From NCBI RefSeq assembly GCF_006345805.1, contig NC_043011.1, positions 64,864,464 through 64,928,463 on the forward strand: a DNA stretch of 64,000 nucleotides, in the 5' to 3' direction. Every line of letters begins with the position of its first letter. Within the stretch, counting starts at the first letter, position 1. Below the pieces are notes generated by a model. The model did no database searches, had not been told where the DNA came from, and was given only the letters and a program-made list of their open reading frames with translations. The DNA is from Octopus sinensis (Eukaryota). Both the position numbers and the translations under genes were made by a program. Positions 21,731-62,999 of this stretch are shown here, one piece after another.

Positions 21731-21849
21731 TTACCATATATTTCAACTCGTATGTTCTTGTTCAACCTTATATATATATAATGTTGATTCGCTAGCCTCT
21801 GCACGCAGTTTTTTTCTCCTCGTTTATTTCTGTATTTCTTTTCCGTGTA

Positions 21850-21887: not shown

Positions 21888-21984
21888 CTTGTTTAATTTA
21901 TATTCCTGAGCGCCATACAAATACAATTGTTTGTTTGTATTCCACCTGCCATCGTCTTTTGTTTATTTTCATAAAGCATCCCGT

Positions 21985-22087
<103 letters not shown>

Positions 22088-22092
22088 TTATA

Positions 22093-22129
<37 letters not shown>

Positions 22130-22139
22130 GAATAAAAAA

Positions 22140-23110: not shown

Positions 23111-23199
23111 ACAAAATATTCAACGTAAAAACGAAGTTTCTACCTTTATAAACAAGGAGTTACAACACCTTTACTTGTGAGATTTTTACTGGCCCCTCT

Positions 23200-23880: not shown

Positions 23881-23945
23881 AACTACACAGACACACACGC
23901 ACATGTGTATTTGTATGCATGTATGTTTACAGGCATGTATATACA

Positions 23946-23982
<37 letters not shown>

Positions 23983-24492
23983 TCGGGGTGAGTACTTGAT
24001 AATTATAAGCACCTGTGTATCATGTTTATTCCTATTTTTATTTTTTTACTTTTTTTTTTTTACTTTTTACTCTTATTTTTTTACTTTTTACTTTTATTTC
24101 TATTTCTATCTTTACTTTATAACCTTATGCCTTTACATTCATTTATATTTCTTTATATTTCTTTATATTCTTTATACCCCCTTTACATCTCCTTATATCC
24201 CTTTATATCTTTATACTCTACATTTTTATATTTTTCTATACTTACACTTTTTATACATACATTTTTTATCCCTCGTCCTGAATTCTCGCCCCTCCATCTT
24301 CACGTCTATATATGTATTTATTTATTTACATTACTTCAACATCCAAATTTCCTCATTCTACATTGAGAGAAGGAAGAGATGGACGCTTCAATTCTATGCT
24401 GTTGACTCATTATGTCGTACGCGAATGAGAGGATTTGCATCCCCAACCAAGAATTTTTGATGTAACACATGTCCTTGTGGAAGCTGTTGTGC

Positions 24493-24570
24493 GCGGCTGA
24501 AGAAGGCCACAGACATACATTATGCATTGTTATAAATCTGTCTAATAAAGGCCCGAAACATATGTACCGC
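24493..24570 (+). ncRNA. Type I hammerhead ribozyme in the 5' pLTR
   Basis: GCGG-CUGAAGA-AGGCC.ACAGA...UCUGU...GGCCC-GAAA-C-AUAU-GUA/CCGC. Stem III is palindromic (ACAUAUGU). Predicted cleavage after 24,566. Confidence 0.78.
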
Positions 24571-29232: not shown

Positions 29233-29309
29233 GCGGCTGAAGAAGGCCACAGACATACATTATGCATTGTTATAAATCTGTCTATAAAGGCCCGAAACAT
29301 ATGTACCGC
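29233..29309 (+). ncRNA. Type I hammerhead ribozyme in the 3' pLTR
   Basis: Same sequence as 24,493-24,570 minus one nt in the stem II extension. Predicted cleavage after 29,305. Confidence 0.78.
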
Positions 29310-32019: not shown

Positions 32020-32056
32020 ATGAAAAGAATTCTATTCATATTATCTGTAATTTGCG
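32020..32056 (+). CDS. Copy 2 coding exon 1, signal peptide (MKRILFILSVIC-G)
   Basis: ATG AAA AGA ATT CTA TTC ATA TTA TCT GTA ATT TGC G|gtaagg. The phase-1 donor joined to exon 2 gives MKRILFILSVICGATA-SKVC, with a basic n-region, hydrophobic core and A-x-A cleavage motif. Confidence 0.8.
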
Positions 32057-32558
32057 GTAAGGTATACTTACTTCATAAAACAGCGCTCATAAATGACGGT
32101 TCACAGACACCAGGTAGAAGCAGGCGCATGCAAATGCATACATGTGTTTATATATGTTTGTATGCTTGATTGCATGCATATATGTATGTAGGTGTGTATG
32201 TACACACACACACACACACATAGTATGCATGACTCTATGTATGTATATCTAGATAGATGTATACATAGATAGACAGGTGACGTTAGCGATTTTTTTTCTT
32301 CTTTGGACATTTCACTTTCTCCTTCCAGACGAAGAGCTATGCGCGAAACAATGTTTTCTTTGTACACGTTCTCTTGTTAATGCTTACATGTTTAAATGAA
32401 TTAATTGAATATCCGTTTGTATGTTTGAAAATTCCACACACCCTTGGCCTTGTCTCATTTTGACACATTATATTTAACACACACATACGTATGTATGTAT
32501 GTATGTATGCATGTATGCATGAATGTATGTAAATATGTAGATATATGTATTTTATACG

Positions 32559-32622
<64 letters not shown>

Positions 32623-32886
32623 GCAGAGTAAAGTAATTTATTTTATAGAAGGAGCTTCTACAGGACTAGAACTGTTTCATTCAGATGAAATCTTCAGGAA
32701 GCTGGCTGTCAAAATAAGGTCTGGTATTTATACATTTAGGCAGATTTAATGGGATTGTGGTGGGGGGCGTTTTGGGGGTAATTTGGTATTTAGGAGATAA
32801 ACAGGGCACAAGCTATTGTTCTTAGGGGAGTGGTCATATATATATATACATATACATGCACACACTCACACGCACATACACACACA

Positions 32887-32943
<57 letters not shown>

Positions 32944-34652
32944 GCTCGAGAAAGCCTTCGCATATCTCCAGAGTAGTCAATGTACTTGGATCATTACTAG
33001 AGATTTGAACTGCATCATTCGAACTATTGAGCCTCTGGAAGAGGGATACAATGCCCCAAACTGCAAAAATAAATGTGCACGCAGTGGCCCACCCTGAGTT
33101 TCGTCGGCCCGTGAAGAACGCCACCTACACCGGCACCACTTGTAGGTCCAATACTGGAGGGTAAATGAATCAGCTGGGCCGGCCCTAATGACTCACCACA
33201 GAACCATTTGTGCAGAGGCTGTTTGACGTCCTAATAGTGGCCCCATCGCCCTAGATCATCACCAGTGGGTACGCCTGCAGTCCGTTTCAACACGTCAGAA
33301 CTGGTGATCTTCGCCCTTGAGTAATCTCAGACAGTCTTTTCTGACGAAAGTCGATATTGCATTTCTGTGGCAGATGGCAGTGCTAGTATTTGGAGAAGGC
33401 GTGATTGTCATGGCGATGGCTGTGTGGTGGCGAGAGACTCGTGGGCAGGATAGAGCATCATGGTATGTGACTGGATTGAACTCAACTAGAAACTTTGACC
33501 GGTGGCCTTCCAAGACATCGGTCAAGGACGGGGCAATTAAATAGCTGTTGCTTGCTAGATTGACCAAATTTTAAGACCTCACATTTTGCCATAATTTGCA
33601 ATCATGGGAATCACGCGTTCCAATAAGACAACGCCCGTGCCCCTACTGCTAGGCTGATAACATACCTCCTCCAACAGCATAATTTCCAGGCACTACCATG
33701 GCCTGTCCTATGTCTGGACGTGAACCACATAAAACACCTGTGGGGCGAAATCCAATGAAGGCTAAATGACATCCGTCCAACGGCGGCAACTACGGTACAA
33801 ATCACTGAAACTTTAACAGTGCCTGGGCTGTTATCCCAATGAACTACATCAATCGTTTTGGCGCATTTAGTGTACAGAGGTTGCCTGCTGGTAATCAACG
33901 CTAACAGTGGTCACACGAGATACTGAGGTCATTTTTTTTATCCAAGACACTGCATCATCACGTGACGTCAAACATGTTTAAGGATATGGCGATTTGTCAT
34001 TAGAAAGAACCGTTTTCTATTTCGTACGTTTGTGGTATCACTTTTGTGGTTCAGTTGATATGTAATTGCATGTTATATGCCTGTACCTATGTATACGTAT
34101 ATGTATATGCATATATTTATATGTATATATATGTTATTATTACTGGATTGAAGTATCTTAAATTGTGGTCACTTTGAATGTTTTAATTTTAGACGCTTAC
34201 CTACCAGAAGAGTTTCAATACCTTTTTATTATTAGATCATTTTTATTCTTGTAAATGTGTTATATATTTCATAAACTTTTTCTACATTCTGCGATTTGAT
34301 ATAAAAGGTATCGGTTTTTAACATCCCTCCTCCTCAGCCACATGCCAGATATATGAAATCTAACATAGAAGTCAATACTTTGGAAGGAATAGAGCTAATA
34401 TATCCACTGGCTATATGCTCAGAACACGTAAAATATATACATTCCGTTAAATTTACAAAGGAAATTCGGCAAGATATCGTAAAAATGAATATTAAACCAT
34501 AATGTAGCAATGGACGATCGTACAAAAAAGGATTCCAAACAAGATGAGGACAAATATCAATCAAATGTAAATAATGTAAATAATTATTACTGCGTTACCA
34601 ATGAATTAGAAAATAAATTTAGTTGAATAATATGTAATTCTTAAAATTGTAG

Positions 34653-34751
34653 GTGCCACAGCCTCCAAAGTCTGCATGACAGTAGCCGAGAAGAGTGCAA
34701 ATACGCTCTGCTAACTTATCCTGTAAAGACTCCCGACATTCATTTCTGCAG
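34653..34751 (+). CDS. Copy 2 coding exon 2 with a 1-nt deletion (99 nt; frameshift, real or sequencing error)
   Basis: Matches 1,910-2,009 except GAGAAAGAG to GAGAAGAG near 34,690 and a synonymous TAT to TAC. Splice sites are intact. Confidence 0.8.
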
Positions 34752-36745
34752 GTATCTTTTTCTCCTTTTGGTACTAATATTTGTATTTCTTTTATAGTAC
34801 TATCGTTCATATTTGCAACTTCGTTTCACAAAATCAATTGTTTGTAATGTATTACACACAGAGGAACAAAAAAATGTGTTCCGCCACCAGGTGGTTAAAT
34901 TTTCCATCAATCTATTCCCGAAACAAAATATTATAGCATTTGCTCGTGGTGCCCCAGCATGGCCGCGGCCTTCAGTCTAAAACATTTTAAAGGATTGTAA
35001 GTATTTAAGACCGGATTTGAAAGATAAATTACTCGAGCCTTTGATTCAACACCCATTCATACGTTAGGATTTCGCCTGATTAAGAAGAATTCAAATATTT
35101 CGATCATAGGCTTGCGTGTTACTTTTGTCAACTATTATTTAGATAAATGTCTTTGTATTTCTAATTAACGTTATTTCCACCACAGTAATATAAGATGATA
35201 TTCTGATAAAGTGAATCGCCCACAGAATTTTAACTATGGTTGTCCGGAAAGTTTTTGCGGATTTTAAAGAAAAGCAAAAGGGCAATTACATTTTTAATCT
35301 ACTAAATATAAAACATTTTCTTGCACAATGGGTCTCCCTCTTTCCATTGACTTGAAATACCCTCTTCCCAGAATTGAGGTTGTTTCGCGCGCAAAGAATT
35401 CATCAAGGTATCTTTTTCCGTCATCCAGGAATTGAAATTTTTACCAGTAAGACTAGACCTGAATAAGTGGAAATCGAAGGAGCAATATCTGGTGAATATG
35501 GAGGTTGGGGTAACACATCCCGGCCGAGCTGCAGCAATTCTTGTCTGGTTCTCAAAGCCTCAACTGCCAGAAATGAACTTTCTTACCTTCCATTTTAAAG
35601 GGTTACAGAATTAACGCAGGTTACAGGAATATAAACCTTCTTCCACGAAAATATACCTGAAACTGTGCTCTAAATGGAGGTGTAGTCAAATCCTATTTTA
35701 TGCACTCAACCATGTTCTAAAAAAAGTCGAAATGTAAGCTACTGTAAATCGGCACGAACTTTCTGGACAACCCAATATTTCTGATATTGTAAGATGAGCC
35801 GACCGAATTGTTAGCACGCCACACAAATGCTTAGTGGCATTTTATCCGTCTTTATGTTCCGCATTGAAATGGAGCCGGGATCGGCTTCTCCATTCCGATG
35901 TCAATAAGTTACGTACCAGTTGAGACCTAGGGTCAAGGTAATCGGCTACCAACACACCAACAAAAAAGATACAAAGAAAAAGCAATAATTTGTCTGGTAC
36001 CAAAATTTGAAATCAATACTTCAAATATGTAAGGCGGTGGGCTTGGAGAATCGTAAATACAAAATGCAAAATCCTTAGCGATATTTTGCCCGTCTTTACG
36101 TTCTTAGTTTCCCATTCAGCTGAGTTCGATTTTGGATTCCATCTTGTCAGGGTCGACAAACTATCTACCAGTGTTGCACAAGGACTATATAAATTTGAAA
36201 CCAATGTTTCTTATACTAAAAACCGGGAGGTAGATCTTGAAGACAAGTATAGAGGCACTCCGTAGGTTACGACGACCTGTGTTCCAGTTGATCCGATCAA
36301 CGGAACAGCCTGCTCATGAAATAACGTGCAAGTGGCTGAGCACTCCACAGACGTGTATCCTTCACGTATTTCTCGGGGTGATTCAGTGTGATAAAGAATG
36401 TGACAAGGCCGGTCCTTTGAAATATGGGTACAACATAACAGGAAGAAAGAGTGAGAAAAGTTGTGGCGAAAAATTACAGCAGGGGGTGGCACCACTCCTG
36501 CAGGGAACCTCATGTAGCTGTAAGCGTTTTTGCTCAATAAACATTCGCAACGCCCGGTCTGGGAATCGAAACCGCGATCCTACAACCGCGAGTGCGCTGC
36601 CCTTACCACTGGGCAATTTGCCTCCACGATGACAAGAGTAGTTCTGAATTCTATGCTTACATATTCTGATATAAAAAAAAAGAACTATATTGACCGTTGC
36701 CTTCTCTCTATAATTGGTAATACTTGATATGTTTTTATCTTACAG

Positions 36746-36834
36746 ACGTCTAGAGTTGTATGAAATCTGTATTACTCATGTAGATCCTGTTTGCCAAAGA
36801 GCCATGCGCAAAGAGCTTACAAAAAAGTGCTCTG
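36746..36834 (+). CDS. Copy 2 coding exon 3
   Basis: Identical to 4,001-4,089; ttacag|A acceptor, G|gtgagt donor. Confidence 0.88.
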
Positions 36835-39275
36835 GTGAGTGAAACAATTTATTTATTATTAAAAAATTTTTAGCAAAATGAAATTCAAGTAGTAGTAGTA
36901 GTAGTAGTAGTAGTGTAGTAGTAGTAGTAGTTTTGTTGTTGTTGTTGTTGTTGTTGTTGTAGAAGTAGCAGCAGTGGCAGAAGAGAGAAGAAAACGAAAA
37001 AGAAGAAGAAGGAAAAGATGAAGTAGAAGTAGGAGGAAGAGGATTATAATCCATAATACACTGAGAACATTTTCTTCCGGTTTATCATGATTGCAGTTCA
37101 ATTTCTAAACAGATATTCATCTATTTTTTTCCGTTGATAAGATAAGAGGCAACCAATTGATGCAGGTCATTAAGTCTATTAATGAGATCACCTGTACAGG
37201 TGACTTTTCATCAGGTTACACGCTTAGCTCTGAAGAAAGGAAACTGTATTTGCATTATTGGTCAAAACATCTCTATCACTTTATGTAAATTTCTAGTAAA
37301 TGTCAACGTTATTAATTAAATTAATCCACTAATTAAAAATGAGTACCACGTAAACACATTTTTTACTTGAATATTACAGATAAGAAGCCCCACATGAGTC
37401 AACGGTCTGCATTGTAAATTTAAACAGCATGTTATTGGCAGTTCTTGTATCAACCATATTTTAATGGAATTCGAACATATGTTGAAAGATTTAATAAAGA
37501 TTTAACACATATTTTTGATAGTTTTGCATTGTATAATCTCTTATCTTCATTATATAAAAAATGTAAGTATATAAAGAACTCCGAAATTTAATTTTTATTA
37601 TAACGTCAAATAATACCATATTCACTTCTTCGCTTCAATAGAAACTTTCTTTACAATTTTACTTTTTTATTCAATCCAATGCCGCAAAGGTCTTATTAGT
37701 AGCTTGACATAATCCTCAAATCGATTAAATTTTAATACCACTTCAATATGAAAGGGTTACTAGACTACTTGTTTTTAATAAAATATAAATATTTACCTCA
37801 ATTTCAACATGATCTCTTTCGAAGTAGTGCAGATATACACCGGTCCCAATCTTCGTGATTCTTTTAGAATCCGGGCAGGAAATGCTTTTCCGGAAGCGAT
37901 TCAAAGACTTTCGGCGATTGGAGCACCTTCTCCGATTTGAGGACCTTCTGCGATTCGAGGACCTTCTGCGATTCGAGGACCTTCTGCGATTCGAGGGCCT
38001 TCTGCTATTCGAGGACCTTCTGCAATTCGAGGACCTTTTGCGATTCGCTATGGAGCTCGACAACGATGTAATAACTGCGACCTCTGAACCGCATTTCCGT
38101 TTTGGGGCAGAGATGACATTCAGCAGGTTCCAGCTCAGGCAATTAGGGAGAATGCAGAAGTGATATCATTTTCTTTTTTTTTTTCCTTTTTGAGAAACTC
38201 ACGTGTGAGAGGATCTCAGTTACAGAGTGCTATGTCATCGTGAAGAATCCGATTCTTCAAGCTCCATATACATGCGGCCTTTCGCGGAAGATTCTCCAAC
38301 AAAAGCTTCAAAATGTCATTGTTTATCCTTTGACGATCTTCATGCACAAACTGATGATAATTTCTCCATATTTCGTCGTAGGTGACTTGTGGCACGTCTT
38401 TGAAATAATTTATCTTCTTCCAGAGAAGTTCTTCCGGTTTTGGAGCGCTCATGCAATCCGAAATATTGCGTACATCTCATTGCCTTGTCGCCGTAAGCTT
38501 CACAAAGCAAGCTTAATGTCTCTGTATCAGACTTCTCAATATAATCCAATGTTTGACGTTGGCTCTTTGTTTCAGCTCTCTGCGCTTGACAAGATAGCAG
38601 CGAAAAGCATACACGTGATCACATCAACTCAAATTTCATAACTTGGGAATTAAAGACAGTGATTTCTGTCCGTAGACAGACACACGAATACCACCGCTAC
38701 CTCCCACTGTGTACGCAACCATGTACTGCCCTGTTTTTCGCGCTACAGGGAACGATTGGTACCACCACGTATCGTTGCTTCCAAGTAAAATGGTGAAGAT
38801 TAACCTCATTTTATAAATTACAATTTATAAATCGCAGCATGTCCATAAGTTGTATTTCTATATAACACAGACGTTCTGTTTATATTATTTATTAATACTC
38901 AACGTTAACAAAGGCATAACAAATTGATTTCAAAGTTCTCTGATAATGCTAGTTGTATTCATATTTACTGATATAACACAATCAGGTTGCTTGAATGTTT
39001 ATATTGTCTTTTGTCAGTGTTAACATTGTATTAATGTATACATACATCCATTCATATTTAATATGACTTGCACATGTTATATCGCATAGAGTATAAATTT
39101 ATAGGGGTAATTCTTCACCATGTTTTTAGTATATCATTAGGAAAATAATCGGTAAATAAACAGAGGTTGAATAGTAAATTCGTGTGAAGAGGAGAATCAT
39201 ATATATAGTATGTTTTCAACTAAAACCATACATGCAAATTAATAGAGATAAGTATAAGTATAACTTCATTCACAT

Positions 39276-39333: not shown

Positions 39334-40597
39334 TAATAATAATAATAATATATCAAAATGCGGAAATTATAATACACATAAAATATTCATGTGCACATAG
39401 ATCTCTACATATTTCGGTGTTTATATAGACGCATGTGTTCACGTATGTTAATACTCATAATGAAATATGCAAATTTAGTCTACACTGGCAACACCTATAA
39501 ACGCATATTTGCAATTATAAACTTTCTTCAATTCCACACTTATAATCATATTGAAAAGAAATGGTAAAAAAACATATCCTTTTGTTTATACGATTTCAAA
39601 AATTTACTTTGTATTTCATTCATTGTTTGCAATGTTTTCTCTCACACACGCTGTTTCTCTAATATAAACACACAGAAACTCGTCTGGTTTCATTCCGTTA
39701 TAACACGCATATCATATTAAAAGTTTTCAAATCCATCATTGGCCGTAAAATAAAACACGTGCATTATTTCGCTTGAACGCGGACACTTCGATAATTACCT
39801 TATCTGAAGGCTGCGAGCTGGCAGAAACGTTAGCACGCCGGGCGATATGCTTTCCCGCATTTCGCCTGCCGTTATGTTCTGAGTTCAAATTTCGCCGAGG
39901 TCAACTTTGCCTGTCATATTTTCGGGGTCGTTAAATTAAGTATCATCTGCGTACTGGGGTCGATGTAATCGACTGCCCTCCTCCCCACACACACAAAAGA
40001 TTTTAATAAAACATTGAAATATTCTTTGCTTAAAGAAAGATAACATATAAATATTATCGAACTAAAACCTACATTTTGAAAAGCACCCTCACTCGAAAAT
40101 ATTTCTAAAGGATAAAAATATTGTTTAACAAAAGCGAAATGAGAAATATTTACAGTAAAATAAAAAGAAACACATATAATTCCGTTGTCAAGTCATTGTC
40201 TAATCGAAAGTAGAGATATTCCCTTTTCAAATTAAGATTATTTTCGGGATATTTTCCCACTATGATCCGCTTGGGTATTTGTACCCTGAAAACTTGTAAT
40301 ATCTTAAAAAACCACTTGCCCGATTTACACGAAACTTGTTTTTTTTTCCGTTCATATTACCATTTCAGGCTAAATATATTTCATTGTATTTTTCCATTAT
40401 GCGCTACTTTGGGTGGATAAATTTAAAAGCGGTCTATCAAGGAAGATCCAAACTGATTTCTAATGCACTTTATATATATATATATATTATATATATATAT
40501 GGGGGTATGTATGTGTGTGTGTGTACGTGTGTGGGTGTGTGTATATGAACTTCGAGCAGATATGCAATCCATTATTATTAATATTATATATATATAA

Positions 40598-43260
40598 ACG
40601 GCCACTCCAGCCCCACATGGATAAATAAACACATACATCCCCTAAAAATAATATAAAAAAAAAAAAAAAAAAAAAAATGGGAGTAATCCCATTCACACCA
40701 ATTATATGTATACAATTATACACACTTGAATAATACATACTAGCCCTAATATACAGAACATACTAATAATCACCAACTAACCACCATCACAAATGAAACC
40801 CACACCCATACAATGACAATACTCCCCCATACCCTATTTACACCTACATAGTAATCCCAATATATTCTTTCATACATGGACGCAAGTGCGTGAAGCACAT
40901 GAACATAATTAGTACGTACAACCCCTAATACACACTAATATATACGTATCAAGCTCGACCTCCACAGTGATAAGTTTACACGCAATCACACCCAGATGGG
41001 TGAATTGCACAACCAGTGAATGCTCACACATACGGGCGCGATTACATTGTTGCATATATCGAGCCAAAATAGTATGCATATGTACATGTGAGGGGTACAC
41101 GTAAATGAAGTGAGCGTGTACCCCCTGTATTTATACCCGTGCGTGAATATACACATGGAGACTACCACACAGGTACAAATGTGTTTAGAAATGGGAGCCC
41201 CATCACTACACTTAATGTATACTCTCACCCATCCGCACGGATGTGTAAGTGTATCTCCGGTGTATATGTTGAGGCTTATATGTAGAGTTGTTGAAGGGAA
41301 CGTCGTTGAAATTGTGAATGAATGGGTAGAGTTGGGAATTGTAACTGGGTGGTGGACTAGTGTTGCTTGGAATTGTGAATGGATTAGGGTGGTAATGAGG
41401 TAGGCATTGAGTATGGGTTACTGTAAGTTGTTTGTTAGAGTTGCTAGGGTGAGCTAAAGCTCATAAATGTATATAATTGATTTTTCATGATAGTTTTTAA
41501 AGAATCCATTCATAATAAATTTTTTTTAAGTAGCGTTGGTTTGCTACGTGGAAATAGTTTTAGTTCCATTTATTATATTTCTCCATTCATACTATGAATG
41601 ACGTTTACTTTCTATGGCGCGTATTCTTTTTTTACATTAGTTATTTCCATGGTAACGTAATTTTTTTGGTTTTTTAACGGCTAAGAATCTAATTTCACTT
41701 CATATTTGTAACTGAATTGTAAGTATATATTTGATTTATCCTTATGTCATAATGTTATTTTTGATATTCTGGTTAATTACGATGTATTTATTGTTGTTTT
41801 CATAAGAGTGTTTATGTATATGAGATTGGTTGTGAGTTTTTAATTGTATAATTAATTTATTTATCTGTATGAGTGTGGGTGTAAATATTGTTGTATATAT
41901 CGAGTTTTAGTGAGTATGTATATGCGTATATGTGAGGGAGCATATGTATCTGTTGTGTGTGTGTGTTTTGCGTGTGTGTGTGTTTGTGTGTGAATGTGTA
42001 TTTGGGTTTGTTATTTAGGATTTGGGATGTATGTGTTAATTTGTCTGTGTGGGGAGGGAGTGGTTTTTGGTGTATATTGAGGTTTATAAGTTAGTATAGG
42101 TTTGTGTATAAGTCTTGGGTCTGTGGTTTACGTGTGGGTTTTTTGTGTGTGAATGTTTAGGTTAGGGGGATTGCTATATAAGTTTGTTATAGGGTTTAGC
42201 AAAGGGAGATTTTATCGTTATATGCTTTATGAGTTTTGGTTTATCATGGTTTTTTTAGGTAATTCGTGGTATTTTGTCTATTTTAGGTGTTGGTTATTTT
42301 TTTACATTGTTTCATTCATAATTTTTGAGTGGTGTTCGTTTTGCCACGTGAATAACCGGGTGGTGGACTAGCGTTGCTTGGAATGTGAATGGAATAGTGT
42401 AGTAGTGAGGTAGGCATAGAGAATGGGATTGGGTTACTGCAAGTTGTTTGTTAGAGATGCTAAGGTGAGTTAAAGCTCATAAATGTATATAATGTTTTTT
42501 GTGGGTGTGTAGTATTGTTGTATATGTCGAGTTTAGTGAGTATGTATAGGCGTATATGTGAGGGAGTATATGTATCTTTTGTGTGTGAGTGTTTTGCGTG
42601 TGAGTGTGTGTTTTGTGTGTGAATGTGTATATGGGTTTGTTATTTAGGTTTTGGGATGTATGTTTAATTTGTCTGTGTGGGGAGGGAGTGGGTTTTGGTG
42701 TATATTGAGGTTTATAAGTTAGTATAGGTATGTGTATAAGTCGTGAGTCTGTGGTTTACGTGTGTGTATTTGTGTGTGAATGTTTAGGTTAGGGGGTTTA
42801 CTTTATAGGTTTGTTATAGAGTTTAGCAAAGGGAGATTTTATCGTTATATGTTTTTAAGAGTTTTGTTTTATCATGGTTTTTTTAGGGAATTCGTGGTAA
42901 TTAGTCTATATTTTCGATATGGATTATATATAGGTTATATATGGATTATATACTTATATTTTTTCATTTATACTTTAATTATTTAAAAGTATTATTTTTA
43001 TATTTTAAAATTTTGATTTTTTAGATTGGAAGTCCACCTGAAGATTGTCGATCAAGACAAGAAACGATTGTAGTGGTGTTTTTTGACTATTTATTAAATT
43101 TTATGTATTGATTAAGTCTTTCCTTGTTTTGTTTTGCAAAATAGTGGTTTTGTCTCAAATAATATTTTATAATATTTTACTATAAAATTGGATTTAATCC
43201 TAAATCTGATTTTTTTTCCCTGTAAATTTGGATATATTCCCTAATATTTATTATTTATAT
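40598..43260 (+). mobile_element. Copy-2-specific 2.7-kb low-complexity insertion in (TA)n, probably a Penelope 3' UTR plus pLTR with an inverted 5' piece
   Basis: Absent from the matching site near 8,060. C/A-rich at 40.6-41.0 kb, then G/T-rich at 41.3-43.0 kb. Internal imperfect duplications (41,345-41,475 vs 42,357-42,492; 41,875-42,275 vs 42,500-42,900). Hammerhead at 43,034. Confidence 0.55.
43034..43076 (+). ncRNA. Minimal type I hammerhead ribozyme (intact core)
   Basis: CCAC-CUGAAGA-UUGUC(GAUCAA)GACAA-GAAA-C-GAUU-GUA/GUGG. Stem I CCAC:GUGG and stem II pair perfectly. Predicted cleavage after 43,072. Confidence 0.75.
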
Positions 43261-44137
43261 TTATATATTATATTATATATATATATTATATAATAATATA
43301 TATATAATATATATATATAAAAGTACATTACAATCGTCTTGGATCTTCCTTGATAGACCGTTTTGAAAGTTACTCAGCCAAACTGACGCATAATGGGAAA
43401 ATACAATGAATTAAATTTTTGCTTCCCTCACTTTTTGTTTACTAAAATTCACTCAAAAGTACTCGGACGACGCGAATCTGACACAGAGGACATTAGCGCC
43501 ATATCCAATCATGTGGGACTGAACCCGAAAACATTGGATTGGGTCGTAAACTCTTTATCACTAACAAAACCTTAGGTACACACAAAAAAAATATAGGCAC
43601 AGACAACCATACACATATGTGCCATTGTGTGCGTACGAGTTGATTGGCAACATTAAGTGTTGGCAATATAAACTGCCATATTGAATATAATATATTACCA
43701 TACAATAAACAAGAGAATATAAATCTAGTTTCCAATTTATACTTAAGCAAAAACACCTGTTTCAGCGCTTTTAACTCTTCAGAAAAAGCCGTACGTAGCA
43801 GAAACGTCAACAGCAAATATAGAGAGCAGGAAACAGAATCCTATCTACAATGAAAATTATTATATGTCTACTGTTCCTTCTTTTTGGTAAGACGTTCTTT
43901 CAAAAAGCAGTACTCAAAAAGCAACGGGTGACACACGCCCGGAACAAATGGACGCAAAGAAATGCATGAATGTATATATGTGGATATGTAACTATTTATC
44001 TGTCTGTATGTATGTCTGTCTATCTATCTGTCTATTTGTATAATATATATGTAAGCATGTATATGTATGAATGAAAGTATAAAATATATAATATTGTTTA
44101 TTATACATATATGTATGTGCGTGTGTGTATATATATG

Positions 44138-44168
<31 letters not shown>

Positions 44169-44210
44169 AATGTATATATATATGTATGTATATATATTAT
44201 ATATATAATG

Positions 44211-44245
<35 letters not shown>

Positions 44246-44328
44246 GTGTGTACATATATATGTATATATATATATACATATATATGTATATATACATATA
44301 TATATATATGTGTGTGTATATACATATA

Positions 44329-44522
<194 letters not shown>

Positions 44523-45133
44523 AGTATGTTTAAATACTTGTTGTGCAAGATTTTTTCATGTGAAGTCGTATGTTGAAACATATATTGTTATATTTCGGAA
44601 TGGTCATTTTGCCAGTTTAGCCAATAAAAACACACGCACTATATATTTGGTGTTATTTTGCTTCAGTGTTATTTATTTTTTACACTAATCTTAATCTTAT
44701 TTCGGCCAGAGTTCTTTCGTCACACGCTTGTGACCGCATCAGTCGTCTTTTGTTTTCTTCTTTCTTATCTGTGTCTCTCCTTACAAACCGTCAGCCATTT
44801 TGTATTTCTATTGTATGTCTTCATTTGCGCATGCTTATATCTCTTTGTGCTTCTTTGTTTAATAGCGTGTGTATGTGGGGGGAGGCCTGTAATATTTGTA
44901 TCTTCCGTTTATATATACTTTACTTACTTTACTTATGAACATGTTTCAGTCATTTGACTGCGGCCATGCTGGAGCACCGCCTTTAGTCAAGCAAATCGAC
45001 CCAGAACTTATTCTTGCAAGCCCAGCACTTATTGTATCGGTCTCTTTTGCCGAACCGCTAGCTGACGGGGACGCAAACACACCAGCATCGGTTGTCAAGC
45101 AATGCTAGGGGGACAAAAAAGACCCACAACCCC

Positions 45134-45165
<32 letters not shown>

Positions 45166-45404
45166 CGACAGGCTTCTTTCTGTTTCCGTCTACAAAATCA
45201 CACACAAGGCATTGGTTGGCCCGGGGCTATAGCAGAAGACACTTGCCCAAGATGCCACGCAGTGGGACTGAACCCAGAACCATGTGGTTGGTTAGCAAGC
45301 TACTTCCCACACAGACACTCATGCGCCTATGTTCATGTAATTTGTATTTACATGTTTTTACATCCACTTATTATTATCATTACATATGCTTGTATGTATG
45401 TATG

Positions 45405-45435
<31 letters not shown>

Positions 45436-47869
45436 GTATGCATGTATGTATGTATGTATGTATAACGACAATACTAGTAATAATAATAATAAATCCTACT
45501 TCTTCTCAAAGATCATACACCCTATAATACGGATGTCACAAAATGTTTGTGACAGCACAGGAGATCTCAGCAGGATCAATGACTGTAACAACACTCGTGA
45601 CCTGACAGGATGTATGGTGGGTAGCATGGATGTGGTATCCCTATACCCATTGATCGACGTAGATTTTGCGGTGGAGAAGTGCGTGGAGATGATTAATGAG
45701 AGCCAGTTGCATTTCCGTAATGTCAACACAGAAGAACTGGGCCTCCTACTTAGACTGACATGTAATAATGAATACTTAGATAAACATAATCTTAGTAGTT
45801 TCTGACCCAGTAGATGTTTAAGAGGTAGACCGCCCACAATTACTTCTATGGCTAGGAAGACAGATATAGAAAGATGGCGCGGATGGAGCAGAGCCATACG
45901 GAGCCCCGCAAATGTCCATCAGGTAAAGAAAATGATCGCACATTCACTAGGAGCTAGTATAAGAGTTACCCTAAAAGGCCACACGTTTAAGTTTAATAAT
46001 AAAATATATGCCCAAGACAAGGGGACAGCCCTCGGCGTTAGTATCGCTGGTGATGTGGCCAACCTTTTCATGGTATGGTGGGACAGAAGGCTTAAAGAAC
46101 GCCTAACACAGAAATCAATCCTCGTAAACATGTACTCTCGCTATGTTGATGATATCAACATAGTGGTAAAGTGCACCCCCACAAGAGAGTACTGTTGATA
46201 TAGTACTATAAACTAATACTATGGAGAGCATCCAGAAAATAGCTAACTCCATCCACTAGAGTATTAAGTTCACAATAGACTACCCCACTAAACACCCCAA
46301 CCATCGACTACAAGTACTAGCCACTGAACTCTGGCTAGAAATTGTGAATAATGAAACCCAAATCCTTCATGCGTAATATGCCAAACATATGGCCTCAAAA
46401 TACTTGATCCACTTGCCAAATTCAATATTTTGATGGCAGACCTCGTCAGAATAATGAGAGATGTGTCACGCATGTGCGAGCCCACAGAGTTAAAGAGACA
46501 CATACAGTATTTCATTCACCGCATGCAGCTCTCAGGTTACATCCATAAAGAAAAGATCAGAGTATACAAAGGAGCCATGAAGAAATTTGATAATATATTA
46601 TGTAATGATAGGAATGGTATTTACCCACTCTATAGGAACAAGTCATGGAACACTATAGAAAGGACAAAAAAGAAAAATAGGGAAGGCCAACTCTTGGTAT
46701 GATAGCCATAAATACCAGAGTGTCATGTTCGTTGACACCACCCCTGGAGGTGAACTGGCGTACCGCTTAAGAAGGACCCTAGACAAACTTAAGCTAAGAA
46801 TTAAGGTTGTTGAAAAGCCAGGCAACACTATCAAATCTATAATTGGTAGAACCTATCATTTTAGTAGAACCCCCTGTACGGATAAGTACTGTACTGTATG
46901 TAGATTTAGCCCACAAACAAACTGTGAAGCCAGAAATGTACTCTAGAGTATAAGATGTATAGAGGGACGATGCAGTAACAAGACAATGACATACGTAGGG
47001 GAAGCGGCAAGAAGCATAAGAGAGCGGGTAAATGTTCATTGGAGACAATTCAAGTAAGGTAAAATCTCATCGATTCTGTACCAACACGCCGACCAGGAAC
47101 ACGGGGTATCAATCAATAACATAGAAATTAAAATATTATCCCCACATAGAACAAATGCAACAATTAGACAAATTACACAAGCTACACACATAATAGAAAA
47201 TAAACCTAACTTGAATAGAAAACTAGAATGGAGCAATAGCACACACCACAACATATGACGATAGAGGATCCTGAAAACATAATAAATACACAGATAAATA
47301 AAAAAAATAGAAATAAAAAACCATATATATATATTTTTTTTTCGATTCGATTTATTATTTTTATTACAAGTACCGTTGTTATACATACATACATACATAC
47401 AAGCATATATACATACGTACATACATACATAAGAGCATATGTAATGATAATAATAAGTGGATGTAAAAACATGAACAAAATAAGAATAAACAAAAACAAA
47501 AAAAAAACAAAATACAAATTACATCAACATATATAAACAGAAGATACAAATATTACAGGCATCCCCCCATATACACACACTAAATAAACATAGACGCACA
47601 TAGAGATATAAGCGTGCGCAAATGAAGACATACAATAGAAATACAAAATGGCTGACGGTTAGTAAGGGGAGATACAAATAAGAGAGAAGAAAACAAAGGA
47701 CCACTGATGCAGTCACAGGAGTGTGACGAAAGAACTCTAGCCGAAATAAGATTGGGATTAGTGTAAAAAATAAATAACACTGAAGTAAAGTAACTCTAAA
47801 TTTATAGTGCCTGTGTTTTTATTGGCTAAACTTGCAAAATGACCATTCTGAAATATAACAATATATACA

Positions 47870-47912
<43 letters not shown>

Positions 47913-48741
47913 ATACATATATATATATTGATGCATACATACCATACATAGATATATATATATATATATATGTATGTTTGTTTATGTATATTTGTATGTA
48001 TGCATATATATATATGTGTGTGTGTGTGTGTATGTGTGTGTGTGTGTTTATATATACGTACATGCCTATACATATGTATATGAGTATGTATATGAGTCGT
48101 GTGCGTGTGTGCGTGTGTTTGTTTGTGTGTATGTATATATAGGTTCAGATTATTCAAATCAAATATTTTAAATTGTTGTAAGTCTGATTATTTTGAATTA
48201 TTTCGAGTACGTATCAGAACTGCTTCAATTTGTTCATTATCGGGTCATCATTCTTAAAATCATTATCGTTTTCAATCAAATTCCTCTGCATTATGAAATT
48301 TGATGAATAAGGTCTCGTTTATTAACATTCGTGCTTATGCTTACACGCCGGTTACATGCAACATGACTCAGAGAACAATTTTTTCGGAGGAAAATACCTA
48401 AAATACTCAATGGTTATATGCTCAGACAACGTTAAATACTGACATTCCGCCTAAACTAGCAAAGAAAGTTTGGCAAGTTATCTTAATGTAAAAAATGCAA
48501 CAACAATTTAGTAAAGAACGATCATAAAAATAATGATCCCATCTATTCTAGAATGACTATAAGATGTTGTGGACATTTTGAAATAATATTTCCTTTAAGG
48601 AAGTAAAATGGCAGCATAAGATTCACAAGTATACGCACCATCATAATCCTAAATATTGCAGTAATCGTCTACTTATAGATTCAATCAAATAATATATACT
48701 CTGATCGAAAAGAAACGTTTCGTTATATATTAAAATTCTAG

Positions 48742-48841
48742 GTGATGCGAAATCCCAATTCTGTGAAAAGGCAGCCGAGAAATATTGCAAATATGTTCTG
48801 ATTCGTTATCCTGTAAATGTGCCAGATGAGATGTACTGCAG
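48742..48841 (+). CDS. Copy 2 coding exon 4 (GDAKSQFCEKAAEKYCKYVLIRYPVNVPDEMYC-R)
   Basis: aaaattctag|GT acceptor, GCAG|gtatat donor, 100 nt. Five substitutions versus copy 1, all amino-acid changing. Confidence 0.87.
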
Positions 48842-49988
48842 GTATATAATCAGCTTTTACAAAAATCCTTCATAAAACCACCAATAAAGTTTGCAACGTT
48901 TTACACAGAGGAGCAAATTAAGTTTCGATTAGAAAATTAATATTTGTAAATCTCACAACGAGAGATATTGAGCACCATACTTTGGAGTAAGAACTATTTG
49001 GCGATATAACTTGACAGTCCTTGTTTAGGACGAATGTTGCTGTAATTAAGCCTCAGGAGGCATCGGCTCCAGTTGGCTATACGACGCGATCTGCGTCCTT
49101 CTATTTTCTAAGGGATTCGTGATACACATATATTGTTTTTTGAGCTGAATGTGGATGCCAGTTTCGCTTGTTCCAAAATGTAAGGAAACAGATCGTGTCG
49201 TATAGCTAGAGGGAGATGATGGCACCTGGGGTTCAATTACAACAACATTCGTCATAAACCAGGACTGCCATTTTATGTTGGCAAACAATCTTTACTCCTA
49301 TGTTATGATTGTTTTGAAATGTAATCCACAAAATGCATCCCGTTTCCGGTTGTGGAAATTTTCCATCATTCTAGCAACCCTCAAACAAAATATTATTGCA
49401 TTTGTTGATAGATCGAAAATGAAAGAAAAAATTACTTGTTCCATTGGTTCAAAACCCATTTTCCCATTGCGGTTTCAACACTATTTATCCATTGATGCTA
49501 TACAAACAATTTCTATCATAGACTCATACGTTCCCTTTGCCAACTGGTCTTCATGTAAAACTAATTGTATTTCTAAATAACATCATTTCCGGCACAAAAA
49601 TATAAAATTGGATATTCGCACAGACGTAAAGCGACCACAGAAGTTTAATACATCAGATATTGTAATATATCGGACTGGCAGAATAGTTAGTTCGCCGGTC
49701 CAAATGCTTAGCGGCTTTCCGTCCGTCTTTACCTTCACTGTTCCATATTCTGCCGTATTCGATCTTCGCTTCCGTCTTGCCAGGGACGTTAAAATAACTA
49801 CCAGTGGGGCTCAAGGATGATATAAATTTGAAACCAATGTCACACATATTGTAAACTTATACGTGCCACTTGACGCCAATTATGGTTTTCAATTCATACA
49901 TTCATATTTTGAGATAAGAAAAGAAACTATATTGGTTATTGTTTCTCATTATAATTACCAAAACTTCAAAAACGTTTTTGTCTTGTAG

Positions 49989-50077
49989 ACGTCTATGGTT
50001 GTTTGAAGCCTGTTTTATTTATGTAGATAGTCCCTGTAAAGGGATTATTCACAAAACCCGTACGGATTATTGCCCTC
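49989..50077 (+). CDS. Copy 2 coding exon 5 (RLWLFEACFIYVDSPCKGIIHKTRTDYCP)
   Basis: tcttgtag|A acceptor, CCTC|gtaagt donor, 89 nt. Four substitutions versus copy 1, all amino-acid changing. Confidence 0.88.
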
Positions 50078-50163
50078 GTAAGTAATTTGTCGTATTATTA
50101 AATGTGTTATATGAACAAAATAATTTGAAATCAAATTTTACTTTTGCTGGACTGTATTTTCAG

Positions 50164-50201
50164 ATAACAAACCAGGTCCCTCGCCATCGTACACAACTTA
50201 A
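50164..50201 (+). CDS. Copy 2 terminal coding exon 6 (HNKPGPSPSYTT*)
   Basis: ttttcag|AT acceptor, TAA stop. GGC GAC in copy 1 reads GGT CCC here. Confidence 0.8.
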
Positions 50202-51273
50202 GCTATTGGCTTCAATGTAACCCAATAAGTGCCAAATGTTTTATTCATATTTTGGGTGATTGCCAGGTGTCTTACGAGTTAAAATAATACACAGTAATTA
50301 AATTTCTTTCATATGTGAATTATTTTGGAAATTATATTTCTTTGGAAAAGTTCCAAATAGGGATCGCTGAAAAACAGCATATCTTTTCAATTGCAATAAT
50401 AGACATTTTAGTCGTTTTGAATCTATAGTATCGAGTGCTAATGTGTATGAAATATCAATGAATGTTATAGATAGGAAAACTAAAGAAAAACAAAACCGTT
50501 TTCAAAAACATTTTCTATTCTTGCTGTTCACAATTGTGGTTTATAACATAAAATGTCATTTAGAATAGCCAGAGTTAATAATGACACAATTTAACTGCTA
50601 AATATTAATAGACGTATGCCTGCAAGGCAATGTATATAAGCAGTTCAGCTTAAATACGAACAACCAACCGTTTAGTGAATTAGTATTTAGCAGATCCCCA
50701 AATGTGGCTCATGGCAGCCAATGGGTTTATTGAGCCTTCAGTCGCTTATCCATATATCAAAGTATTAGTTAATCGAGCACGACTGTTCGTACTGGTCACA
50801 GGCTATTCCTCTTAAATTTCTGTATTTACTAGATGAATGATATTATAGTGACGAAAATATTTTTTCCGTCACACTGCACAATCATTAGATAAAATTATTT
50901 TCTACATACGTTTCCATTCGGGCAATGTGAATGCTTGCCTTTTACAACGGGTCTTCATATGTGAGAGTATATTCTACGAAGGGAAGGGGGAAATAGCAGA
51001 AACAATGTAGTAGGATAATGAATAGTTACAAGAAGCAATCTATGCAATACAACAGAATATCAATTATAAAATCATTTTTGTAATTTATAAATTTGCGAGA
51101 AATAAAAGAAGGAAATAAAGGAGTCGACATGCTTATACTTCATTCTTTGGCTCAAAACAATACTGCAGCTTCTTTCATATTACGGTTAATGTATTTTGGT
51201 TGGAAGTCATTAAAAATTACTTATGGAGCGGTAAGGAAATTTTCCGTCATAAGGTAGGTCTACAGTGCTTTAG

Positions 51274-51325
<52 letters not shown>

Positions 51326-51327
<2 letters not shown>

Positions 51328-51379
51328 TCAACAATTGAGGGTAAAATTAATTAATTAATTTTACCCTCAATTGTTGAAA
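51326..51379. repeat. Perfect 54-bp palindrome in (TA)n
   Basis: tttcaacaattgagggtaaaattaatt|aattaattttaccctcaattgttgaaa, with no loop. Confidence 0.92.
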
Positions 51380-51405
51380 TTATAATATTTTGAATTTATA
51401 TATAT

Positions 51406-51466
<61 letters not shown>

Positions 51467-51886
51467 ATTATATATATATATATATATATATTAGGCGCAG
51501 GAGTGGCTGTGGGGTAAGTTGCTTGCTTACCAACCACATGGTTCCGGGTCCAGTCCCACTGCGTGGCACCTTGGGCAAGTGTGATCTACAATAGCCTCGG
51601 GCCGAACAATGCCTGTGAGTGGATTTGGTAGACGGAAATTGAAAAAGCATGGCGTATATATGTATATATATATATGTATATGTGTGTGTATGTGTTTGTG
51701 TGTCTGTGTTTGTCAGACCAACATAGCTTGACAACCGATGTTGTTGTGTTTATGTCCCCGTAACCTAGCGGTTCGGCAAAAGAGACCGATAGAATAAGTT
51801 ACTAGGCTTACACAGAATAAGTCCCAGTGCTCCAGTATGGCCGCAGTCAAATGACTGAAACAAATAAAGAATAATATATATATATT

Positions 51887-51940
<54 letters not shown>

Positions 51941-52049
51941 ATTGTATATATATATGCATATATATATATACATATATATTTATATGTATTTTTTTTTTTA
52001 TTTATCTAGTTTCAGCTCACAATCTGTGGCCATGCTGGGGCACCCTCAT

Positions 52050-53895
52050 GCGGTGTTGCAACATGATTTTACTTCACAAATGCTTTATAGCTATTGCCAT
52101 TTGGTGCATCTGAGAGTTCGATGCAGCTGCCCTCATCTGCACATCCTGCCTGAAGTTGGTTCATCTGGGATACCTGACAAGAAAGATCCAGTTTCATTTT
52201 AAAAACATCTGCATCCACCCCATGCATGTCCCTGAGATTCTTTGGGAGGATTTTGAAGAGTTGTTGGCTCTCGGAAGTCCAGGCTGTCAGAGTATCTTGT
52301 CCTACATCTTGACGGCAAATGTAGAGACCTTGGCACCACGCAGTGGCGCCCAGTTCTGGCATTTGTGTAACTCTCGATGCCAAAGTTTGGGACAAGTCCT
52401 TCTAGGATCTTCCTGATGTATATTATGGCATATTTTTCTCGCCTACGCTCTAAGGAATAGAGTTTCAATCTCTTGAATCTTTCCCAAAGGATTATATGCT
52501 GCACAGAGGCTATCTTCTTCTTGTAGCTCCTTTGGATCGCCTCAAGTTCTGTGATTAACTTGACACTGGATGGTGACCATAGCTGAGAGCAATAGTCAAA
52601 GTTGCTTAGGACAATTGTCCTTCAGCGGACCATCATGGTTTCCTGGTCTCTTGTTCTAAAGATTCTAAGAATCGATCCGGTCAGCCGCCTACATTTCATT
52701 GCCAATTTAGCAACATGAACATGAAAGGTTGCATCATCACGCATGTAAATACCAAGGTCTCGCACTGATTGTGCCTCTGGGATTGCAGTCCCTCCTGGTC
52801 CAGGGTATTTAGTAGGTATTGCATTTAGTTTTACGTGCTGATAGCATTGAGCTTCAAACCTTTCAGCATTGACCTGCATGCTATTCGTTTCAGTCCACTT
52901 GTATATTATGTGCAGCTCACATTGTGGGTGCTTAGTGTCTTCAGGGTCATGTATTGCCTGTGAAACTTTTGTATCATCTGCATAACTTGTGATCGTGGCT
53001 CTCTGCGTGGCTGAGGGCATGTCTAAGAAGGTCATTATGAACAGTAGTGTTCCCAAAACAGTGCCTTGTGGAACACCGCTCCTTATTTGCGTGTTAGTGG
53101 AAGTGGCCTCATTAGCTACTACCCCCTGAAGTCTATCCTTCAGAAAGTCATGAAGCCAATTTTCCAACTATGCCAAGATCATGCAGTTTGTGACATAGCA
53201 TTCCATGAACCACTTTATCAAAGGCCTTTGCAAAGTCGAGATATATGACTTCCACATTTCAGTGGTTGAGCAGTCGTTTCAGCACCTAGTCAGTGTTGTA
53301 GGAGCTGAGTTAAGCAGCTTCTTCCTGGTCGGAAACCATGTTGGGTGTCAGGCAGCAAGTCATTTTCTTCAAGGAAGATGATTAGTTTCCTGCTGACTAT
53401 TCGTTCGATGACCTTGCTGATGTGTGAGGTCAGAGAGATAGGTCTGTAGTTCTTGGCCTCCACTATGCTACCTCCTTTATGAATAGAGCATATTTTACCT
53501 TCCTTCAGTTTTCTTGGAAATTTGCCAGTTGCAAGGAAGCTCTGAAAGAGAAACTGCAGTGGTCTTGCTAGGACTCTCTTACATACTATTAGAAGGATAG
53601 CTGGGAATCCATCGGGTCCAGTAGCTGAGTTTGTTTTCATTTCATCAATCATTGCTGTCTCCGATTTTATATCTGCAGTGGTAAAGAAGTCAGTTGGATT
53701 GGTGACTTCAAAATGCCCTAGGGGTTGAGGGAAAATACTTTTGAATAGCTCATTTAGTATTTCACTTACCCTCATTGGATTTCCTGTGAGTGTGCCATCC
53801 TTTCCAAGAAGTGGCCCTATCATACAGTGCACCGTAACTGTTTCTTTTGCATACCTGTAGAAAGCTCTGGGGTTAGATTTTATGTTGTCTATATG
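52050..53895 (-). mobile_element. CR1/L2-like LINE fragment, copy 2 (about 600 bp more 3' sequence than copy 1)
   Basis: Same RT motifs (NYRPISLTS, QHGFRPGRSCLTQLL, GVPQGTVLG, YADD), continuing to LKLYSLERRR and FKMKLD. Confidence 0.85.
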
Positions 53896-53910
53896 CATTA
53901 TATATATACA

Positions 53911-58624: not shown

Positions 58625-59175
58625 ATATATATAATCAAAATAAGCAACAAGAATGACTCCGGTAATTTGGTACGATTGCTACGTACTACATCATTTATTA
58701 AATGCTGTATGTATTACAGCAGTTTTAAAATGCTCAGCACTCATCAGCCAATTGTAGAGGTTTTCCATTAATACAAAACTTTTCATATCAAGTGGCAACA
58801 TTTTAGAGAAGGTAGATATATAGACAAATATGTGGATTTAAATTTTAAGAACATTTGAGGTAGTGGAGCCCATCAACTGACTCTTAGTCTATATATAACT
58901 GATTCTTTGTCGATATATCTACCTTCTCTATAATATTGCTACTTGATATGAACATTTTTGTATTAATGGAAAACATCTACAATTGGCTGATGAGTACTCA
59001 GCATTTTAAAACTGTTTTATTACTTAGAACATTTAATAAAATGATGTAGTAAGAAACGATCGTACCAAATTACCGCAGTCATGCTTGTTGCATATTTTGA
59101 TTATAATCACCCCACGGATATTTATGGATAACACCATACAGAATTCTGGTGCATCTAAATTAAGTACCATATTTA
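58625..59175. mobile_element. Foldback Penelope pLTR-derived element with a hammerhead in each arm
   Basis: About 58,630-58,830 is inverted relative to about 58,900-59,105. The + arm at 58,983-59,068 reads UUGG-CUGAUGA-GUACU...AGUAA-GAAA-C-GAUC-GUA/CCAA. Same family as 9,076-10,455. Confidence 0.7.
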
Positions 59176-62559: not shown

Positions 62560-62606
62560 ACATATATATATACATACTTATATATACATATATATATATA
62601 TATATA

Positions 62607-62889
62607 ATATTGAGGGTACTACTATTCGTAGATACCAACACGCTAAGAGGGACCAATGCGGTCAAAACTACTAAAAATAAACAAAATTTTACCGAATGCA
62701 AAACTTCAAAACACATCATTTTAAAAAAGGAATTCAGTTACATATCACATGTGATATGTAACTGAATTCTTTTTTAAAATGATGTTTTTGAAGTTTTGCA
62801 TTCGGTAAAATTTTGTTTATTTTAGTAGTTTTGACCGCATTGGTCCCTCTTAGCGTGTTGGTATCTACGAATAGTAGTACCCTCAATAT
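62607..62889. repeat. Near-perfect 283-bp palindrome with no loop, abutting (TA)n
   Basis: atattgagggtactactattcg...catatcaca|tgtgatatg...cgaatagtagtaccctcaatat. Only a few small mismatches or indels; centre at 62,749/62,750. Confidence 0.92.
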
Positions 62890-62999
62890 AATACAAATGA
62901 ATATTTTCAAATAGGAAGAATTTACGGTTTTTTCTCTTACGAGGTTTTTCACGCTGACTACTGATAATTCTTTTAAAGATTTTATCCTCAATTGTTTAA

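Follow-up and report, generated by a model that had tools for sequence, protein, structure and literature searches.

A duplicated octopus gene for a small six-cysteine peptide has probably changed at about the neutral rate

Main

The interval at positions 48742-50201 of a 64,000-nucleotide stretch of the Octopus sinensis genome (RefSeq assembly GCF_006345805.1, contig NC_043011.1, forward-strand positions 64,864,464 to 64,928,463; hereafter the window) is likely to hold exons 2-4 of a gene that we call gene 2B, which are the last three exons of an unannotated gene for a small secreted peptide with six cysteines. Gene 2B has a twin, gene 2A, in the other copy of a tandem segmental duplication, and between the two the exons of the interval differ almost only by amino-acid changes. 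The original prediction on this DNA took the excess of 11 non-synonymous changes over 1 synonymous change, together with a neighbouring 'domain 1' that appeared frozen, as the mark of positive diversifying selection on surface residues of gene 2 ('domain 2') after the recent duplication, as in toxins, pheromones or recognition proteins. Our analysis suggests a plainer history. Since the recent duplication the coding sequence has probably changed at about the neutral rate; the ratio of 11:1 is within the neutral expectation and selection is not shown. Purifying selection since the duplication is likewise not detectable in the interval exons, and neutrality and positive selection are not separable by these data. 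The asymmetry between the two 'domains' is a property of the DNA blocks in which they lie, introns and intergenic DNA included, and not of protein domains.

Gene 2 and its differences between the copies

Spliced from their own first exons, genes 2A and 2B each give an intact open reading frame (ORF) of 87 codons. Gene 2B, on the forward strand, starts with a 37-nt exon at 43850-43886 that carries the ATG and the signal peptide MKIIICLLFLLF and ends in phase 1 at G/GTAAGA; the corresponding exon of gene 2A (8623-8659, forward strand) is identical. Exon 2 (48742-48841, 100 nt) encodes cysteines 1-3, exon 3 (49989-50077, 89 nt) encodes cysteines 4-6, and exon 4 (50164-50201, 38 nt) encodes the tail HNKPGPSPSYTT and ends with the stop codon TAA. 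These three forward-strand exons were numbered 4, 5 and 6 in the original prediction, and their twins in gene 2A lie on the same strand at 14968-15067, 16222-16310 and 16397-16434. All three have ag/gt borders in both copies. We found no disabling mutation in gene 2B: its ATG, 87-codon ORF, six cysteines and all ag/gt borders are intact.

The counts behind the original prediction proved exact when we repeated them. Its exons 4-6 differ between copies A and B by 12 substitutions, of which 11 are non-synonymous and produce the 10 named replacements (from A to B, H>Y, A>V, K>N, E>V and K>M in exon 2 of gene 2, T>A, N>Y, N>S and E>G in exon 3, and D>P in the tail exon), and one is synonymous (GGC>GGT). 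Its exons 2-3, which belong to the neighbouring gene 1, differ by one synonymous change (TAT>TAC) and a 1-nt deletion in copy B, and the six cysteines and the splice sites are all kept between the copies, as had been claimed. The D>P replacement and the synonymous change form three adjacent substituted bases (GGCGAC>GGTCCC), so that the 12 substitutions amount to at most 10 mutational events; such adjacency is common in the non-coding alignment as well, with 39 pairs among 444 substitutions. Each of the five changes from a charged to an uncharged residue has the charged residue in A and the uncharged one in B.

Mosaic divergence of the segmental duplication

Comparison of the window with itself revealed a large tandem segmental duplication, with 94-98% BLAST identity between copy A (1-23186, its left end cut by the window start) and copy B (32635-57981). 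The spacer between the copies occupies 23187-32634 and the duplication period is 32,634 bp. The duplication is recent and at least 23 kb long, with a true unit of probably about 34.8 kb.

Divergence between the copies is not uniform. The left block (1-8070 of copy A) differs from copy B by 113 substitutions over 7827 aligned bases (1.44%), and over positions 2001-4000 of copy A the figure goes down to 0.5-0.6%, whereas the right block (8047-23186 of copy A) differs by 443 over 13226 (3.35%; Fisher p=4e-18 for left versus right). Of the two genes, gene 1 falls within the less diverged block (1.44%) and gene 2 within the more diverged one (3.35%). An insertion specific to copy A (9076-10455) coincides with the block boundary, and one specific to copy B (40597-43270) sits at the boundary of both divergence blocks; a second B-specific insertion lies at 51325-52650. 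Mosaics of this kind usually go back to a later gene-conversion or unequal-exchange event, and the difference between the blocks most likely stems from such an event in the left block or, alternatively, from mis-polishing.

A more radical version of the assembly argument would have A and B as two haplotypes wrongly set in tandem, or B as partly polished with copy A reads, so that the differences would be allelic or artefactual. This is consistent with a patch at 34640-37550 in which the lowest divergence (0.5-0.6%) coincides with a one-sided excess of one-base deletions. However, there are no N gaps in the window, the divergence of 3.35% is maintained over 13 kb, each copy has a kb-sized insertion of its own (the 40597-43270 insertion in B and the 9076-10455 insertion in A), and the DNA to the right of 57981 is unique flank. 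We regard this explanation as highly improbable, and treat A and B as true duplicates in what follows.

Tests for selection on gene 2

For the interval exons, the Nei-Gojobori method counts 178.8 non-synonymous (N) and 46.2 synonymous (S) sites with 11 and 1 differences (Nd and Sd), respectively, which gives pN=0.0615, pS=0.0217 and a ratio of 2.84. The Fisher p value for this ratio is 0.47, and the binomial probability of at least 11 non-synonymous changes among 12 is 0.26. The pairwise maximum-likelihood (ML) omega (F3x4) between 2A and 2B is 3.2, with p=0.20 in a likelihood-ratio test (LRT) against omega=1. An omega above 1 between 2A and 2B is therefore significant in no dN/dS test, neither the Fisher test nor the LRT.

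The non-coding DNA of the same block offers a second yardstick. The interval exons have diverged at 12 of 227 bases (5.3%) versus 384 of 11989 non-coding bases (3.2%), at p=0.086; when the 10 events are counted rather than the 12 substitutions, p is 0.34. Segments of 227 nt drawn at random carry 12 or more substitutions in 13.9% of cases, and the divergence of the non-coding DNA beside the interval is 2.1-3.9% (3.2% overall). The same yardstick applies to the asymmetry between the two genes. Local non-coding rates predict 1.4 exon substitutions in gene 1 and 7.2 in gene 2, against the observed 1 and 12 (10 events), and the exon asymmetry of 1:12 does not depart from this local background expectation (p=0.35). 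'Domain 1' is unchanged and 'domain 2' changed because gene 1 and gene 2 occupy blocks of different divergence. The 1:12 split that the original prediction described is thus present in the sequence, but it is not specific to a domain: it follows the blocks of 1.44% and 3.35%, introns included.

Several observations pull away from a neutral rate and towards diversifying selection, and they are best considered together. The ML omega of 3.2, an exon divergence 1.7 times that of non-coding DNA and the comparison of N-site divergence with non-coding divergence (p=0.05) all lean to acceleration, as does the direction of the pN/pS ratio. The replacements favour positions that are variable between the old paralogs, since gene 1 and gene 2 also differ from each other at 7 of the 9 replaced core positions (p=0.12). 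With gene 1 as the outgroup, the exon changes lean to one lineage, with 4 B-derived, 1 A-derived and 7 uninformative, against 17:17 in non-coding DNA. The long-term omega of the family is about 1 overall and 1.48 outside the cysteine codons. Finally, 12 differences mean low test power, and real positive selection could be hidden.

Despite these leanings, we consider positive diversifying selection on gene 2 after the recent duplication unlikely. No test is significant (p=0.47, 0.26, 0.20, 0.086, 0.12 and 0.37), and the main argument, the asymmetry, belongs to the whole block with its introns. Three of the substitutions form one adjacent cluster, and at a divergence of 5% nothing can be learned from the conservation of six cysteines and of the splice sites. 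The original prediction had also named an outcome that would tell against it, a copy that turns out to be a pseudogene; for the interval the result is the opposite, with gene 2B fully intact. What stands of the proposed diversifying scaffold peptide is a secreted disulfide scaffold with freely varying non-cysteine positions (omega 1.01 and P=0.006 for six kept cysteines between the older paralogs, see below), and what is not supported is the diversifying selection read from the asymmetry and from 11:1. A rate of coding change close to neutral remains the reading that we prefer. The case is a cautionary one, in which an 11:1 excess and a contrast between a frozen and a changing domain dissolve when set against the local non-coding divergence of a mosaic duplication.

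Gene conversion from gene 1 into gene 2B was considered as a source of the clustered changes and rejected: the B-derived states mismatch gene 1, with only one site matching.

Gene 1 and a patch of one-base deletions

Gene 1B, also on the forward strand, starts at 32020-32056 with an exon that encodes the signal peptide MKRILFILSVIC and ends in phase 1 at G/GTAAGG; its copy A equivalent lies left of the window. Exon 2 (34653-34751, 99 nt) carries the frameshift, and exon 3 (36746-36834, 89 nt) continues into GGTGAGTGA up to 36843, which can be read through to ..KKCSGE-stop or used as a G/GTGAGT donor; these are exons 2 and 3 of the original prediction. The counterparts in gene 1A (forward strand, 1910-2009 and 4001-4089, with GE-stop to 4098) have an intact ORF, the 5' end of this gene being outside the window.

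The 1-nt deletion in exon 2 of gene 1B lies near 34690, where one A is missing (GAGAAAGAG>GAGAAGAG) and the frame shifts to an early stop. Its surroundings are unusual. Between 34640 and 37550 of copy B (compared with 2001-5000 of copy A), 19 one-base sites are missing in B and 1 in A, alongside 25 substitutions, whereas the rest of the duplication has 38 such sites missing in B and 22 missing in A (Fisher p=0.009 versus the patch). Most one-base sites of the patch lie in short homopolymers. Because about 0.1 one-base indels accompany each substitution outside the patch, about nine in ten of the patch sites would be above the expectation from divergence. Hence, we do not accept the frameshift as proof of pseudogenisation, given that it is inside a patch of one-sided one-base deletions, and an assembly or polishing error is probably the likelier cause than a pseudogenising mutation. 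The patch looks like local under-polishing or read mis-assignment in duplicated DNA. It also has the lowest substitution divergence, and therefore part of the unchanged state of 'domain 1' could be a shared-read artefact. Carried into an annotation, such a patch would wrongly make an intact gene a pseudogene.

If the deletion were instead genuine, it could be part of a wider decay of array B, the pair of genes 1B and 2B: the frameshift of 1B would be pseudogenisation, and the replacements in 2B, with five charged residues lost, would be neutral decay of a redundant copy. The deletion with its early stop in exon 2 of 1B fits this explanation, as do an exon substitution rate at or above the non-coding rate, the A-to-B direction of five out of five charged-to-uncharged changes and the mostly B-derived state of the changes that can be polarised. 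However, gene 2B is without disabling change and its signal exon is identical to that of 2A, and the frameshift is found among the 19 one-base sites missing in B within a 3-kb patch of 25 substitutions (Fisher p=0.009). In addition, were the freedom to change confined to B, the exons should show roughly half the non-coding divergence, whereas the observed value is above the non-coding one. We therefore find decay of array B very unlikely and retain the view that both copies of gene 2 have changed at about the neutral rate.

Two further observations concern the surroundings of gene 1. In copy A a relic of the ancestral tail exon of gene 1 (4090-4214) can still be aligned to the tail exon of gene 2; it no longer has an acceptor and shows TCA in place of TAA; the copy B counterpart (36835-36960) is replaced by a (GTA)n/(GTT)n microsatellite. 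Upstream of exon 2, a stretch of about 1 kb (300-1300 in copy A and 32960-33950 in copy B) is relatively GC-rich and microsatellite-free in both copies, and looks like a DNA transposon remnant or other coding sequence.

One gene or two

The original prediction joined the exons of genes 1 and 2 into one gene with two domains. This framing is doubtful, as the second unit carries its own signal-peptide exon. Judged by their structure, what was described as two domains is probably a tandem pair of older, paralogous single-domain genes, which were duplicated again to give 1A, 2A, 1B and 2B. The genes share a layout in which a 37-nt exon for the signal peptide precedes exons of 100 and 89 nt; gene 2 adds the 38-nt tail, and all junctions are phase 1. 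In copy B, unit 1 (about 31621-36960) and unit 2 (about 43433-50250) repeat an entire gene, introns included and in collinear order, with homology that extends from at least 400 nt (about 400) ahead of the ATG to the tail exon. The signal-exon regions of genes 1 and 2 match at 61% (31701-32263 with 43515-44072), with the ATG, the surrounding sequence, the 37-nt length, the phase and the donor all conserved between the two signal exons. A tblastn search of the window for further family members returned only the four units.

In the two-domain model, a single six-exon gene would run from the signal exon at 32020 through exons of 100, 89, 100, 89 and 38 nt, with exon 3 spliced over about 12 kb to exon 4 and the second signal exon left as a relic or serving as an alternative first exon. 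There are reasons to take this model seriously: with all junctions in phase 1 the fusion is in frame, exon 3 of unit 1 keeps the consensus donor G/GTGAGT in both copies, and the ancestral tail exon of unit 1 has decayed in 1A, where the acceptor is lost, and is deleted in 1B. It is nevertheless the less probable of the two structures, although a real possibility. The model needs a unit 2 without an independent start, but this unit comes with a conserved signal exon and with homology in the upstream region. Even at a divergence of about 0.5 substitutions per site it still retains the upstream region and a 37-nt signal exon with ATG, length, hydrophobic core and GTAAG donor. In both copies the reading frame of unit 1 runs into a stop two codons beyond exon 3, and ATTAAA follows about 20 nt further on. 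What the old duplication copied was a complete gene, reaching from at least 400 nt ahead of the ATG through the tail. We therefore describe the locus as two tandem genes per copy; the choice between a one-gene and a two-gene model leaves the verdict on selection unchanged.

Constraint between the older paralogs

On this two-gene model, an old tandem duplication (K about 0.5) gave rise to gene 1 and gene 2, and the recent segmental duplication copied the pair to form arrays A and B. The older paralogs allow constraint to be assessed over a longer time. Between the two genes 35% of the exon sites are different (K=0.47), compared with K=0.54 for the alignable non-coding DNA, and gap columns number 1 in the exons (the copy B deletion) versus 286 in the non-coding alignment. 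Omega between the two genes is 1.01 overall and 1.48 without the cysteine codons, and neither value differs from 1.

Despite such rates, the architecture of the gene has lasted longer than chance would allow. Under the fitted codon model with omega=1 the probability that six cysteines are kept is 0.006. In a neutral nucleotide simulation at the same divergence, the probabilities are 0.0185 for a kept ATG and no stop, 0.0014 for six cysteines and 0.0115 for five splice dinucleotides. Because retention is improbable both in this simulation and under the codon model, we conclude that the frame, start, splice sites and cysteine framework were kept by selection. To judge from these patterns, the four units are real genes, at least until recently, and the remaining peptide has changed at about the neutral rate.

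The predicted peptide and its possible relatives

Gene 1 encodes a precursor of at least 75 aa and gene 2 one of 87 aa. The mature peptides are predicted to have 61 and 72 aa, a mass of 7-8.6 kDa and a basic isoelectric point (pI) of 8.6-8.8; they are rich in K and E and share the cysteine framework C-x7-C-x16-C-x8-C-x7-C-x11-C. In both units an N-terminal signal peptide is encoded on its own exon, MKRILFILSVIC in gene 1 and MKIIICLLFLLF in gene 2, each followed by G, with a hydrophobic core and agreement with the -3/-1 rule as judged by eye. The peptide would be exported by way of this signal peptide and cleaved near GATA/S or GDA/K, a site that was also placed by eye. By inspection, three amphipathic helices lie between the cysteines, and the mature peptide probably adopts a compact helical fold with three disulfides. 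It would act outside the cell, probably by binding a partner through a freely varying surface that tolerates, and possibly benefits from, rapid change. Candidate roles, in no order of preference, are a salivary or skin effector, a chemical signal and a host-defence peptide.

Homology searches brought no firm relative. A word-indexed search of 5.8 billion clustered proteins found no homologue of the spliced 137-aa product, but this is weak evidence for orphan status because the proteins of the octopod-like host itself seem not to be in the database. There was no match for the spliced product in NCBIfam, nor any match at E<=10 among the PDB sequences, RGM included, by phmmer or with a three-sequence profile, and neither keywords nor six 7-residue motifs in full text brought up relevant literature. 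In Pfam the 137-aa product gave only sub-threshold matches, to RGM_N, NPR2 and cofilin. Both units weakly match the same part of the RGM_N profile (PF06535; E=0.004 and 0.033). We rejected the RGM N-terminal domain, which at 17.8 bits is below the gathering cut-off of 24.2 and is without a PDB match, and take it as a chance match of the cysteine pattern; BLASTP against an approximate N-terminal stretch of RGMB gave E=0.28 and 1.1.

In organization, the octopus genes resemble the conotoxin superfamilies of cone snails. Both have a short signal exon and a small peptide with a cysteine framework, spread over few exons with long introns, and in both tandem or segmental duplication goes along with retention of cysteines, frame and splice sites while the other codons are near neutral (omega about 1). 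However, no toxin family is similar to the octopus peptide in sequence or by Pfam, and unlike conotoxins the octopus peptides have their own cysteine spacing and no propeptide. Their signal peptide is not the conserved part, with 9 of 12 residues differing between the paralogs, and an omega above 1 is not demonstrated for them. A second point of comparison is the attractin type of Aplysia, that is, small helical three-disulfide water-borne pheromones of molluscs. The likeness would be that of secreted mollusc peptides with six cysteines and a length of about 60-70 aa, helical by inspection in the octopus case; the two differ in cysteine spacing, have no shared motif and showed no similarity in the searches made.

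Secreted peptide families of this kind are the usual place to find venom components, chemical signals and immune effectors. If real and expressed, the genes described here would add an unannotated, lineage-restricted, disulfide-rich secreted family to cephalopod biology. The bolder claim would be that the four genes belong to an octopod family of restricted taxonomic range whose secreted, helical peptides have three disulfides, with every non-cysteine position changing at or above the neutral rate and 2B positively selected since the duplication. We think this combination unlikely; were it true, a toxin, pheromone or host-defence scaffold new to cephalopods would have been caught while it diversifies.

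Other elements in the window

Both copies of gene 2 carry, between the signal exon and exon 2, a degenerate retroelement on the forward strand with reverse transcriptase (RT)-like ORF fragments (45341-47054 in B and about 11426-13373 in A). Its presence in both A and B means that it was inserted before the recent duplication. Another element is found at 24018-29345, where an intact ORF of 486 aa (24743-26203, forward strand) is flanked by direct repeats of 96% identity (24018-24606 and 28771-29345). Relatives of this ORF carry PF26215, PF28514 and sometimes GIY-YIG (PF01541), and its best named matches are Argonauta hians proteins at 38-41% identity. By its sequence features, this looks like a young Penelope-like or related retroelement. 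Downstream of gene 2B, two adjacent ORFs of 181 and 202 aa on the reverse strand (52622-53898) have an RVT_1 match just under the Pfam cut-off, which identifies the region, on sequence grounds, as a fragment of an element of the long interspersed nuclear element (LINE) type. A tRNA scan of the window found no tRNA genes.

Palindromic stretches occur at 62592-62904 (95% arm identity), 58630-59105 (82%), 51276-51439 (86%) and 48984-49298 (70%), and are possibly foldback elements or elements similar to miniature inverted-repeat transposable elements (MITEs). The last of these self-complementary stretches lies within an intron of gene 2B and has its copy A twin at 15240-15532.

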